Of a DNA stretch of 64,000 nucleotides, positions 10,106 through 56,814 are shown piece after piece. Location of the stretch: assembly GCA_963514005.1 (NCBI GenBank), contig OY740797.1:24862001-24926000 (forward strand), in the 5' to 3' direction. The stretch's first letter is position 1, and each line of letters opens with the position of its first letter. This DNA comes from Raja brachyura (lineage: Eukaryota). The notes below the pieces were generated by a model, which saw only the letters and a program-made list of their open reading frames with translations, made no database searches and was not told where the DNA came from. A program made the translations under genes and the position numbers.

Positions 10106-10160
10106 ATGTTGGCCAGCATTGTACTTCGCTGTTTCTCTTTTTGGGGGATAATTTTCACAG
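10106..10160 (+). CDS. Gene A exon 1, signal peptide [19 protein letters not shown]
   Basis: ATG at 10106, 55 nt, hydrophobic, phase-1 donor CAG|gtacat. Same length and similar gaATGTT context as the gene B leader. Confidence 0.85.
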
Positions 10161-54800: not shown

Positions 54801-56814
54801 ACCCTTTCCAGCTTAACTACGTCATGCGTAGTTGCAGAGGCAGATACGATAGGGGTATCTTAAACATTTTTAAATAGGCAAATGCAGGGAATGGAAGGAT
54901 ATGTCTCGCAAAGAGCGGATATTAATTTAGCTTGGCATCATATTCGGCACCGAAATTGTGGGTCGAAGGGCCTCTTCATGTTCTATGTTTAGGAGTTGTT
55001 GAATTCTTTTTTGAGCAGTTATAAGTTTGGAAATTGATGGGATGCTTTAGGTATTTGTCGTGTTCGCAATACATGTCATGGTACTTAAACTGGACAAGGT
55101 ATGGTAGCGTGTCTGTGTGTATTCAGTAGTTGCTGATGTGGGATTGAAATGTTACGCTGTGCGGAGGGAAGAACGTACTCAGTTGGGTGAAGCTTTCTGG
55201 CATATTTCCACCCAGAAATCGAGTATGACGCTGACGTGTAATTATCATTCAGACTGAAGGTTCTGTTCTCCCACTCGACGCTCTGCTGAGTTCCAATGAA
55301 ACTCGACGTAAAATGACGGATAACCGTTTGATTAATATTCTCAATTTGCAATTTAATCATTTGAATTCTGGTACTACTTTCATCTCCTTTGTTTACACAT
55401 TTTGTGACGTTGCATTATTCTCAGATTTTCCCCCGTTTATAAAGTAATATTTTTTTGTCTTCCACTCACACTAATACGCCACCACGCCCCCCACCTATTC
55501 TTCCTTACGATACCTCTGAATTTCTTTAACAATTTTCATCATTAACTTTTGTTACTTCCGCTATAACGCTCTCGGCATAAACTAATTTCTGTAGTCGCAG
55601 ATGTGTCGTGACTCGTATTTTATCATTCATTTTCTTTGAAACTATGATTTCCTAAAATCACGGTAGAATAGTATTTTACGCAAGATTGCGGTTAGAATAT
55701 ATCACGCTCACTATTCACCAAATGTTTCTTCCAACAACATACGCTTTGTTAACATTTATTAGATGGACTAGAAATAGCTACATAAATGGTCAAACATGGA
55801 TATTCTGCAAAATAGCTTAATTCGTGATCTGCCAAGAATGTTCAATCGTCTGGATATCACAGGTCTCGACTCGAACGCAATGTTTTTTTTTTGACTAAAC
55901 GATTGCAGCTACAATACTCGCTAACATATGATGGTTTCCATTTCATTGACTACCACTTGCAATCTTAATCTATACTCTTTTCGCTGGATGCAATTGAGGT
56001 CCCGCCGAGAAAATTAACCCCAGACATAAAAAAGATAACTAAATGATATGGAATTAAAGAATAATAATTGTCCAACGATCTCATGGTCCACCAATCACGA
56101 AAAACCAATTACTTAATTGGAGCAAAACCTCTAGTACAGACTGAGCAAGGGTTCGTTTATCGCTATTTTTTAAACTCTGTAGCACACCATATGTATGTGT
56201 TTCTATTGGGATAAGAAACATCAAGTAAGACTCACCGTGTACAATAATCCTCGTGCCATTGCCTTCGGAACTGTTTCCTTTCCCGTCTCTCACACTGCAA
56301 TAATAGATCCCGGAGTCACGGAAGCCCACGTCTAACAGATGTAATTCGGCAAATCCCTTCGGGACGTTGTTCATTGTCATCCTCCTGTTTGGGGTGGGAG
56401 CCAAAGTCTCTTCTTGACCCTCTTTCTTCCAGTATACATCCAGCAGTGCTTTCTGACCGGAGTTTTGAAAAGCACAGTATAAGGACACATTTTCACCTTT
56501 CACCTTCGTTACCTTTTTGGGAATCTGACGCACACTGAACAAGAAGGGCCGGTCAGTTACTGTCAGAATTTAAAAAAAAACACACGTTAAACTTGTGAAA
56601 TGACAATGAACCGATTGATAAAAATCCAAATGGCTGAAATAGATCGACCGAAAAGTAAGAGTACAGTAGGGTAGAAGTTTGAAAGTTGTCCATCTTATAC
56701 TTTACGCGGATTGACTTTTTTCCCTGTTATTTTCATTTAATAGAGAGAAATATATTAACCAGTGTAACTCATGTGCAGGATCGGGAGACACAGCAGCACG
56801 GCAAACATAAACAT
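40142..56814 (-). CDS. Gene B: VJ-C1 IgSF inhibitory receptor (SIRP-alpha/NKp30-like), 327 aa. Exons 56814-56760, 56559-56236, 44779-44498, 41830-41720, 41039-40996, 40309-40142
   Basis: All six exons have GT/AG boundaries and compatible phases (1,1,1,1,0). They sum to 984 nt with no internal stop. Confidence 0.92.
40996..41039 (-). CDS. Gene B exon 5, short cytoplasmic exon (APEDIEVRTHHFEKQ)
   Basis: Acceptor ttctctactag, donor CAG|gtaatt. Its 44 nt convert phase 1 to phase 0, as the next exon requires. Confidence 0.8.
41720..41830 (-). CDS. Gene B exon 4, uncharged transmembrane exon
   Basis: Acceptor ttccctttag. Reads GTSVKLFCFLAGGFAICVLIIPALAFFARRCKLHSTE. Donor G|gtaaga. Confidence 0.9.
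41920..42470 (-). mobile_element. CR1 RT fragment in gene B intron 3
   Basis: TSGV..GSVL..FSDDTKV..L.EW..KWQM. Confidence 0.75.
44498..44779 (-). CDS. Gene B exon 3, C1-set domain
   Basis: Acceptor tatttgcag. Reads VSPTPLKI..LNCTTAPFFPKDCELTWYKDG..EGLYLVSSFL..YSCNVSH. Donor G|gtacga. Confidence 0.95.
44932..46707. mobile_element. Non-autonomous DNA element with long, internally repetitive inverted arms (foldback-like)
   Basis: 44932-45230 is an imperfect reverse complement of 46494-46707, with repeated aaccgaa/gccgaa units. Confidence 0.75.
47200..47880 (+). mobile_element. Degraded CR1 LINE
   Basis: GKVVDVVWMD..AFD remnants and a CR1 3' UTR. Confidence 0.7.
49640..51080 (+). mobile_element. 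Degraded Rex1/Babar LINE with an inserted minus-strand CR1 3' piece (about 50070-50510)
   Basis: PQGCVL, KFADxTT and VESVLTGYITPWF remnants. Confidence 0.7.
52260..54129 (+). mobile_element. Divergent CR1-group LINE with (CCAGAT)n tail
   Basis: KASGPDGIS, FKKGSGTDPANY.PVSLTSVCCRLLEHVI, GTVLGPLLFL and FADDCVVYR; tail atccagatccagatccag. Confidence 0.8.
53427..53577. mobile_element. Miniature inverted Penelope-terminus insertion with 15-bp TSD
   Basis: Starts ggttacacaaaaagctgg and ends tgcagttccttctttaa, like 27745-29549. TSD catataaaagcctgg at 53412-53426 and 53578-53592. Confidence 0.85.
56236..56559 (-). CDS. Gene B exon 2, VJ-type V domain
   Basis: Acceptor ttctgacag. Reads VRQIPKKV..GENVSLYC..VYWKKEG..AELHLLDVGFRDSGIYYCSV..EGNGTRIIVH. 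Donor G|gtgagt. Confidence 0.95.
56760..56814 (-). CDS. Gene B exon 1, signal peptide MFMFAVLLCLPILHMSYT-V
   Basis: 55 nt, hydrophobic, phase-1 donor G|gttaat. Confidence 0.85.

Follow-up and report, generated by a model that had tools for sequence, protein, structure and literature searches.

We read a 64,000-nt stretch of the Raja brachyura genome (assembly GCA_963514005.1, contig OY740797.1, positions 24,862,001 to 24,926,000 of the forward strand; hereafter the window) frame by frame on both strands for the exons of two convergently transcribed neighbours, gene A (+ strand, 10106-18612) and gene B (- strand, 56814 to approximately 40070). Both appear to belong to a family of non-rearranging receptors of cartilaginous fish that holds inhibitory-type as well as activating-type members. 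Each gene has a 55-nt leader exon, a germline-joined VJ exon, a C1-set exon and a transmembrane (TM) exon. The coding exons are as follows, a slash in a splice-site string marking the exon boundary.

10106-10160, + strand: gene A leader exon; ATG at 10106, 55 nt, 18 residues plus the first base of a Gly codon, donor G/gtacat
10322-10642, + strand: gene A germline-joined VJ exon; V-set, phase 1-1
11287-11601, + strand: gene A C1-set exon; Pfam C1-set
13941-14039, + strand: gene A TM exon; Arg codon AGG at 13964-13966, phase-1 donor AAAG/gtaaag
18587-18612, + strand: gene A terminal coding exon; G/AA CAA GCA GAA ACC AAT GCA TGC TAA, read as EQAETNAC and a stop
56760-56814, - strand: gene B leader exon; ATG at 56814, 55 nt, MFMFAVLLCLPILHMSYT + G
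56236-56559, - strand: gene B germline-joined VJ exon; ends ...DSGIYYCSVRDGKGNSSEGNGTRIIVH (EGNGTRIIVH)
44498-44779, - strand: gene B C1-set exon; Pfam C1-set and family C1 profile
41720-41830, - strand: gene B TM exon; (G)TSVKLFCFLAGGFAICVLIIPALAFFARRCKLHSTE, 23 uncharged residues between a flanking Lys and RRCK
40996-41033, - strand: gene B candidate cytoplasmic exon cyt1; EDIEVRTHHFEKQ, phase 1 to 0, ccccag/AA...CAG/gtaatt
40068-40309, - strand: gene B tyrosine-motif tail; read through it gives SPTYADLNFSGQKKTEKNRRHEEQTTYAQVKQSRSVLQGKFVYVAHLGESATYDF and a stop at 40144-40142

All immunoglobulin (Ig) and TM exons of both genes have a length that is a multiple of three, phase 1-1, AG acceptors and GT donors. 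Against Pfam, the V-set and C1-set matches reached E values of 1.1e-12 and 7.7e-12 in gene A and of 8.8e-12 and 4.2e-13 in gene B. When hidden Markov models (HMMs) built from family members were run over the 64 kb, they recovered exactly two V exons (E 1e-42 in gene A and 6e-35 in gene B) and exactly two C1 exons (7e-39 and 2e-33, respectively), with no further V or C1 exon above noise in the window. These scores are far above chance, and genes A and B are real, intact-looking genes. A J-like motif (GNGTRIIVH in gene B) lies inside the V exon of both genes, so there is no separate J segment and no space for a recombination signal sequence; the V region and the J-like GNGT...V strand are contiguous in a single exon ending in a phase-1 donor. 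The initial annotation had proposed this common layout on opposite strands, an Arg in the TM segment of gene A without an immunoreceptor tyrosine-based inhibitory motif (ITIM), and a neutral TM segment with PTYADL and TTYAQV in gene B. Each of these points was recovered, namely AGG at 13964-13966 and a 12-residue tail without tyrosine in gene A, and the TM exon at 41830-41720 and tail exon at 40309-40145 in gene B. The gene A terminal exon (18587-18612), gene B cyt1 (41033-40996) and the gene A fossil exons described below are new. Protein comparisons of the two genes were made exon by exon.

The V exon of gene A is 83% identical to Leucoraja erinacea XP_055505064 (P0001) and 82% identical to Amblyraja radiata XP_032892405 (P0002), and its C1 exon and TM segment are 87.5% and 90% identical to those of P0001. 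Non-coding flanks at 6448-6589 and 14423-14500 match skate gene models as well, in support of orthology, and we regard P0001 as the Leucoraja orthologue of gene A. In V and C1 trees composed of family members only, gene A falls in an elasmobranch-wide clade of skate, ray and shark genes (lineage A). This clade excludes gene B, has SH-aLRT support of 96-98% in both trees and holds mostly inhibitory members around gene A. The gene A leader is likewise similar to the lineage-A leaders of Mobula P0159 (MLASVGPHCLHLWMIYFTG) and Heterodontus P0161. A leader of the 10106-10160 type is missing from both skate RefSeq models (P0001, P0002). The segment at 6448-6589 (+ strand), within a GC-rich block at 6000-8000, matches P0001 residues 16-65 (75% and 62% over two short pieces) and is a conserved upstream segment that the P0001 model translates in place of the true leader. 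The segment at 14423-14500 (+ strand) matches residues 451-482 of P0002 at 69%; since the P0002 model also holds a second C1 and reads the 18587 exon in the old frame, it looks like a chimaera of two neighbouring genes and translated non-coding DNA. At 9937-10044 (+ strand), about 60 nt upstream of the gene A start codon, lies a weak tail-like relic (..TDYAAVDSNASKSKSRHIDRSRTAVKEE.., E about 5), which may mark the border of a tandem duplication unit, where one copy's tail would adjoin the leader of the copy that follows.

With the conserved GLV as anchor of the alignment, the Arg in gene A, like that in P0001, corresponds to position 7 of the 22-residue neutral TM segment of the inhibitory lineage-A members P0002 and P0159, and their cytoplasmic KR pair is TC in gene A. 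The hydrophobic stretch IINCV directly precedes the Arg. Genomic contigs of four sequencing runs were aligned to 13800-19799, one identical to the window (X1), two about 3% diverged (X3 and X5, organism B) and one about 1.2% diverged (X6, organism C). The TM exon of organism B differs by M>I, I>V and one silent change, none of the changes listed affecting the Arg codon. Downstream, the Leucoraja P0001 model ends in ...CIARKNKDQAETDAC, and a peptide search placed its equivalent at 18587-18612, behind the acceptor ttcatcttgtag/AA and ahead of poly(A) signals at 19146 and 19192. The resulting cytoplasmic tail is RTNKEQAETNAC, of 12 residues and without tyrosine. Gene A thus looks activating-type by sequence, and its Arg would permit pairing with an acidic-TM adaptor of the FcRgamma, CD3zeta or DAP12 kind that carries an ITAM (immunoreceptor tyrosine-based activation motif).

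Between and beyond these exons, gene A retains the apparent remains of an inhibitory tail, in the ancestral order.

14904-14939, + strand: gene A fossil (or optional) cyt1; phase 1-1, intact AG/GT
16787-17215, + strand: gene A fossil cyt2; SMECAGEAIVPY (16787-16825), then (TTTAG)23 and a high-copy repeat, then ..ALNLSKSRINPMPV.. (17141-17215)
18587-18750, + strand: ancestral reading of the gene A last exon; in phase 0 NKQKPMHAKVIYAPLVTAGNKKREQ.. to a stop, with the ITIM VIYAPL, then frame-shifted QPIKQMRGADVIYSEWNPK

The counterparts of the cyt1 exon are GTQKEEETSD in Mobula P0159 and GTRKEEERSD in Amblyraja P0002, both of which stand directly after the TM segment. The cyt2 exon is interrupted inside its first tyrosine motif, right after the tyrosine (the intact P0002 equivalent being SMERASEAMVPYAALNLSKPRKVPRQVNQERTLYAQ). 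The stretch 18587-18750 is homologous to the last exon of P0159 (TKQRPPDRNFTYARIAV...QPRKNQSVEVIYSEQNPKD) and to the family consensus NKLTYAALxxxGSKKT, and past the frameshift QPIKQMRGADVIYSEWNPK matches the P0159 C-terminus QPRKNQSVEVIYSEQNPKD. Both diverged relatives show the same architecture as the window, and they carry 14 bases, AATCAAGAAAGGAC (= NQERT), after 17194 that have been lost in this genome; indels of 4 and 6 bp near 17194 also differ between the relatives and the window. The 14-base loss and the neighbouring indels are what neutral decay would leave, and the fossil exons degrade through indels whose length is not a multiple of three. Contig depth in each of the four DNA runs rises from approximately 7 to 1e5-1e6 at 15600-17200, 17400-17600, 17800-18600 and 19600-19800, and these segments are very high-copy repeats common to three related skates.

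From this record, gene A is probably an inhibitory-type gene that has turned activating-type and left its old inhibitory exons behind as fossils. The conversion would have comprised the replacement of a small residue by Arg at position 7 of the ancestral TM helix, the change of the cytoplasmic KR stop-transfer pair to TC, and the splicing of the phase-1 TM exon straight to the acceptor of the former last ITIM exon, which is in phase 0. Joined in this way, the last exon is translated in a shifted frame and terminates after eight codons (EQAETNAC). The phase 1-1 structure of cyt1 means that its inclusion would leave the frame of the terminal exon unchanged and would not restore the ITIM frame. 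The skipped exons would then have persisted in the states seen here, cyt1 intact, cyt2 split by a repeat and shortened by the 14-bp deletion, and the last exon frameshifted. Lineage A is otherwise inhibitory, and the conversion would have occurred in skates. The predicted out-of-frame splice into a former ITIM exon, together with the decaying cytoplasmic exons, is what appears to be new in this gene.

Gene B is, by contrast in its signalling end, of the opposite type. Its TM segment and its tail exon at 40309-40145, which begins SPTYADLNFSGQKKTEKNRRHEEQTTYAQV... and encodes SPTYADLNF...TTYAQV, may be bridged by the candidate exon at 41033-40996, found by enumeration of candidate exons, which has good sites and leads from phase 1 of the TM exon to phase 0 of the tyrosine exon. 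The tail is homologous to the ITIM tails of the family (P0040, E 2.6e-6), and TTYAQV fits the pattern of an immunoreceptor tyrosine-based switch motif (ITSM). Two endings can be drawn. In the read-through form, which ends in ...TTYAQVKQSRSVLQGKFVYVAHLGESATYDF and a stop, the four-tyrosine spacing of the family is kept and the third and fourth motifs are degenerate. In the alternative form, a 95-nt intron (40222-40128; donor CAG/GTTAAG at 40223/40222, acceptor 40128) is removed to give ...TTYAQ/VKEMSENILTYATLDLTLL with a stop at 40070-40068, yielding the canonical ITIM LTYATL. The V exon, for which alternative acceptor readings were rejected (the other frame has a stop), is separated from the C1 exon by an intron of 11.4 kb. 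The best database identity was 39% for V and 50% for C1 (Heterodontus P0091). The end branches of gene B measure 1.37 and 1.08 in the two trees, with no supported placement, and it appears to be the most divergent family member among those compared. In sum, gene B looks like a divergent inhibitory-type member, with a neutral TM segment, YADL, the ITSM TTYAQV and possibly the ITIM LTYATL, and once tyrosine-phosphorylated it would be predicted to recruit SH2 phosphatases, as SIRPalpha does.

The wider family emerged when the gene A V exon was searched against a library of 1.84 billion proteins, together with further profile searches and name look-ups. Besides the close matches P0001 and P0002, this search yielded dozens of further proteins that share the layout and are 220-400 residues long. 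About 95 proteins carried both the family V and the family C1 (more than 90 members), and all came from sharks, rays or chimaeras, in the genera Callorhinchus, Heptranchias, Heterodontus, Scyliorhinus, Mustelus, Carcharodon, Chiloscyllium, Hemiscyllium, Stegostoma, Pristiophorus, Pristis, Narcine, Mobula, Hypanus, Hemitrygon, Leucoraja and Amblyraja. The members listed for each species all lie on one chromosome-sized record, and the profile score falls sharply past the chondrichthyans, from E 1e-22 to 2e-10. The ectodomain consensus reads WWKxGE...DxGVYYC...GNGTGSxLxV, then VPPTPLKI, then a C1 domain with FYPE..TWYKDG...GLYEASS...VYTCLVSH, followed by the TM segment. The tail usually holds four or five tyrosines, in xxYAxLDL, RTVYAQ, KLTYAALxxxGSKKT, STEYAQL and VIYxE. 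In an AlphaFold model of the member P0162, most of V and C1 has predicted local distance difference test (pLDDT) values above 90; the best matches of the model in Foldseek are the light chains of antibody Fabs (V-C1, E ~1e-15), and it shows the two-domain V-C1 fold of Ig light chain (IgL) and T-cell receptor (TCR) chains. A search with the P0162 tail only (residues 296-374), aimed at homology to the SIRPalpha tail, returned only close relatives among 30 candidates and carries no weight as evidence.

Both signalling types are found in the family, 36 members having a neutral TM segment with ITIMs and 12-14 an Arg in the TM segment with a short tail, as counted from automatic gene models. At least 10 members of other lineages combine a short tail with an Arg that stands four residues before a conserved Gly and is followed by 16-17 uncharged residues; P0053, P0072, P0185, P0186, P0091, P0114 and P0004 are examples. 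On the V tree, activating-type members are dispersed, with at least 8 state changes among 33 scored rows. The recurrence of Arg at the same TM column across lineages, together with these scattered origins, supports a functional and recurrently selected TM Arg. In several cases the ectodomains are near-identical and the signalling ends opposite; for example, P0001 (Arg in the TM segment) and P0002 (ITIM tail) are 95% identical. In the activating-type members P0091, P0114, P0102, P0213 and P0165, the Arg is followed by 16 hydrophobic residues and D/E-His (e.g., R FILSVLVLLLLTIIIM DH). We take this arrangement to resemble the NxxR...E(D/N)W TM segment of the mammalian FcRgamma-coupled receptors of the leukocyte receptor complex (LRC), such as FcalphaRI, LILRA, GPVI and NKp46, a likeness that could reflect convergence or a common type of TM exon.

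These data are best described as a chondrichthyan-specific multigene family of predicted non-rearranging type I receptors with a split leader, a VJ domain, one C1 domain, a TM segment and a tyrosine-motif tail. Holding inhibitory-type and activating-type members by sequence, it would be a paired-receptor family in the broad sense. The initial annotation had anticipated such a family on a VJ-C1 ectodomain, and the roughly 95 members, 36 of them inhibitory and 12-14 activating in type, bear this out. It had also expected the genes to be uncharacterised and automatically annotated under names such as SIRP- or Ig-light-chain-like. This proved accurate, as RefSeq lists members as tyrosine-protein phosphatase non-receptor type substrate 1-like (SHPS-1/SIRPalpha-like), SIRP beta-1-like and Ig lambda-1 light chain-like, and further as tapasin-related-like, NCR3 ligand 1-like (B7H6-like), CD276 homolog and HLA-DO beta-like. 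No published description of the family was found in the literature, the shark NCR3 family being set apart from it by descriptions only, and the family is largely undescribed, being known in public annotation under misleading automatic names.

The headline of the initial annotation, that genes A and B form an activating/inhibitory pair, did not hold. Such a cognate pair, of the KIR2DL/DS or SIRPalpha/beta kind, would bind the same or related ligands and counterbalance one another, and the two genes do lie adjacent and tail to tail, with the same exon layout and opposite signalling features. However, they are only 27.6% identical in V and 38% in C1, much less than recognised pairs, and they do not show the closely similar ectodomains with opposite ends of a paired receptor in the strict sense. 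Within the family itself, P0001 and P0002 are far closer, as noted above, and P0163 and P0053 have branch lengths of 0.013 and 0.03. Moreover, the two genes stand in separate parts of both trees, gene B outside the well-supported clade of gene A, and gene A has its own fossil inhibitory tail. We therefore consider a cognate pair extremely unlikely. The ectodomain-matched counterparts of gene A are the inhibitory lineage-A members Amblyraja P0002 and Mobula P0159; given that gene A sits within a mostly inhibitory clade, its matching ITIM-tailed receptor would be a lineage-A gene and not gene B. Adjacency and opposite tails are expected from a cluster under birth-and-death evolution and so provide no evidence of a common ligand. 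In all probability, as judged from sequence divergence, genes A and B are distant paralogues that became neighbours through the birth and death of genes in the cluster, and not a ligand-sharing pair. The remark in the initial annotation that the V domains are divergent, look like old paralogues and may have no common ligand agrees, as to divergence, with the V identity found here.

Several observations weigh against the assignment of gene A as activating-type and of gene B as inhibitory-type. The 20 uncharged residues after the gene A Arg are enough alone to span the membrane, so the Arg could lie at the outer interface, and a basic residue ahead of 20 uncharged ones occurs in the inhibitory members P0122 and P0206 as well. 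The P0001 model, a Gnomon prediction, lacks a leader exon and has an aberrant N-terminus, and the scoring of family members as activating or inhibitory relies on automatic models, some of them truncated predictions. A search for sequencing runs covering the locus found no RNA run; all splice junctions are predicted from the genomic sequence, including that from the gene A TM exon to 18587 and those of gene B cyt1. In gene B, the Pro at -2 of PTYADL means that this is no textbook ITIM, the 3' end may be either of the two candidate endings and LTYATL would be possible in only one of them, and the long branches could fit fast evolution or early decay, though frames and sites are intact. Along these lines, gene A could be non-signalling, either a decoy or a sink for ligand whose Arg is juxtamembrane, or a pseudogene-to-be after the loss of its tail, as a helix beginning after the Arg and the decay of the tail exons would allow. 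On the other hand, frames and splice sites are undamaged throughout the leader, V, C1 and TM exons, and Leucoraja, at protein identities of about 83-90%, retains both the TM Arg and the 8-codon tail. Hydrophobic residues (IINCV) stand before the Arg, which aligns within the TM segment of inhibitory paralogues, and many lineages of the family have an Arg in this TM column. A non-signalling gene A is accordingly doubtful, and conversion to an activating-type receptor remains the preferred reading.

The relation of the family to described receptors was also considered. The best solved matches of the family profile were nurse-shark UrIg2 (9dmx, E 1.8e-35), an IgA1 heavy chain, SIRPalpha (2wng, E 2.3e-31) and SIRPgamma (4.7e-28). 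Single V exons gave generic Ig matches in the PDB (Robo, contactin, titin, VNAR, light chains) with no ranking of SIRP, NKp30 or TCR. The C1 exon of gene A has the UrIg2 C1 domain as its closest solved relative, and that of gene B is closest to Ig constant domains and UrIg2. The RefSeq names would imply that the genes are true SIRP orthologues, gene B SIRPalpha-like and gene A SIRPbeta-like. The SIRPalpha match spans V and C1 and is the best solved match outside Ig and UrIg; SIRPs, too, have a VJ-like V followed by C1-set domain(s) and a TM segment, with several YxxL/V motifs in inhibitory members and, in activating ones, a short tail combined with a basic TM residue. The xTYADLNx and TEYAxx motifs presumably also resemble the SIRPalpha tail. 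In contrast, the SIRP ectodomain consists of one V and two C1-set domains, whereas each gene here has a single C1 exon between V and TM. SIRPs are also marked by CD47 binding, by a SIRPalpha tail that recruits SHP-1/2 and by a Lys through which SIRPbeta binds DAP12; this Lys lies in the middle of the TM segment, and gene A instead has an Arg near the outer end. The family is moreover confined to cartilaginous fish, where numerous divergent genes form clusters. Scores of UrIg2 and Ig chains equal or exceed those of SIRPs, no SIRP was among the best 60 chains for the single C1 exons of gene A or B, and the RefSeq names of members extend to tapasin-like, Ig-lambda-like and B7H6-like. According to a 2026 survey (PMC13262535), the SIRP family goes back to tetrapods, which counts further against SIRP orthology, and we consider that explanation unlikely.

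It is very unlikely that the genes belong to the shark NCR3 (NKp30) family, of which Kinlein and colleagues reportedly described eight divergent nurse-shark subtypes in 2021 (GenBank MT914154-MT914161). Shark NCR3 is linked to the major histocompatibility complex (MHC). As a VJ receptor, NKp30 does not rearrange and carries a TM Arg, and receptors of the NKp30 and Xenopus XMIV type, whose activating form has a TM Arg, have undergone multigene expansions in some cold-blooded vertebrates. Of our two genes, gene A has an Arg in its TM exon (13964-13966), and the TM core of gene B has none; the V of gene B matches human NKp30 chains over its own full length, if weakly (E 7.5e-5). Nevertheless, NKp30 joins a single VJ domain to its stalk and TM segment without a C domain, and both genes carry a C1 exon (11287-11601 and 44779-44498). 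Sequence similarity is weak, NKp30 is not among the best 60 chains for the gene A V, and no database member carries an NCR3-like name. The literature distinguishes NCR3 as a VJ-domain gene from UrIg as a VJ-C1 gene (PMC12227049, PMC10751288). UrIg and UrIg2 share with our family the split leader (a 55-nt phase-1 leader in genes A and B), the non-rearranging, germline-joined VJ exon, a C1-type constant domain and their occurrence as elasmobranch genes. They differ in having several (3 to 11) C1-type domains, where genes A and B have one C1 exon each and the family is present in many copies, with signalling ends of the ITIM or Arg-TM type. C domains number 9-11 in UrIg2 and several in UrIg, both being reported as single genes, and the report mentions neither an ITIM tail nor paired forms for UrIg or UrIg2 (PMC12227049).

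Other paired systems were compared as well. The inhibitory-to-activating conversion is a principle known from KIR, and, as in KIR and LILR, activating genes would here arise from inhibitory ones through a charged TM residue and truncation of the tail, with scattered and repeated origins. The KIR/LILR ectodomain is unrelated (C2/I-type versus VJ-C1), and the truncation in gene A differs in proceeding by out-of-frame reuse of the old last ITIM exon, with the skipped exons still visible. Teleost NITRs and hagfish APAR have germline VJ-like V domains, activating (charged TM) and inhibitory (ITIM) members and large, fast-evolving clusters. Compared by description only, NITRs, which are bony-fish receptors, have an I-type second domain or none and APAR consists of one V, so that neither has a C1-set domain and both come from other taxa, whereas the second domain here is C1-set and the members are chondrichthyan. 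Since each of the named families (SIRP, NKp30, UrIg/UrIg2, IgL/TCR and NITR) has a defining feature that is not found here, in the case of IgL and TCR chains separate V and J segments with recombination signal sequences, the family fits none of them. By analogy, it may work like SIRP, KIR or NITR-type paired receptors. Two further readings seem improbable, namely that it represents a surviving membrane-bound, non-rearranging VJ-C1 lineage with ancestry among UrIg/UrIg2 and Ig/TCR chains, not tetrapod SIRPs, or alternatively that it is a deep root of the SIRP family.

The remainder of the window contains one further trace of the family and several retroelement-like sequences.

23706-23841, + strand: orphan tail-exon fossil; in phase 0 TMQFQCDPKLTYITLNIAG.. 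(ITIM LTYITL), then one frame off STIYAQ/gtaagt

The frameshift in this fossil is consistent with one extra A in the run GAAGAAAAGC, and its closest similarity is to the tail of Heptranchias P0164 (TMQQIDDKKLTYAALNIAGSE, E 0.005). No V, C1 or TM exon accompanies it, and it looks like the remnant of a lost third gene. It was rejected as a lost tail of gene A, being closest to the P0164 lineage and having no in-frame join, while gene A has its own fossils at 14904, 16787/17141 and 18587. Retrotransposon fragments at 24473-27877, 29975-31836 and 35532-36218 occupy the 21 kb between the 3' ends of genes A and B, and another (12521-13132), whose open reading frame (ORF) has no Pfam match, lies within the C1-TM intron of gene A. 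Pfam RVT_1 was matched by the ORFs at 25953-27404 (E 6e-26) and 35535-36218 (E 4e-13) and, below threshold, by that at 30344-30940 (E 2e-4). Two nearly identical 255-aa ORFs at 28064-28831 (- strand) and 28421-29188 (+ strand) are inverted and overlapping; they have no Pfam match at E 0.001, and the Cys-rich C-terminal half presumably resembles the endonuclease domain of Penelope-like retroelements.

Paired activating/inhibitory receptor families are central to innate recognition and have been well studied in mammals, birds and teleosts, and hardly in cartilaginous fish, the oldest lineage to possess antibodies, TCRs and an MHC. The family described here joins an antigen-receptor-shaped ectodomain, a germline VJ plus one C1, to SIRP-like signalling ends, and it bears both on the form and function of non-rearranging relatives of antigen receptors and on the age of the SIRP-type inhibitory module. 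Gene A would offer a clean molecular record of an inhibitory-to-activating switch, with its TM Arg, the out-of-frame reuse of an ITIM exon and the fossils still in place, and it makes the counterbalance model of paired-receptor evolution testable in skates. If the proposed ancestry with UrIg and Ig/TCR chains is true, the family would illustrate in living animals the build of a pre-RAG antigen-receptor chain coupled to signalling through ITIMs or adaptors, and gene A would trace, one exon at a time, the switch of such a receptor from inhibitory to activating.

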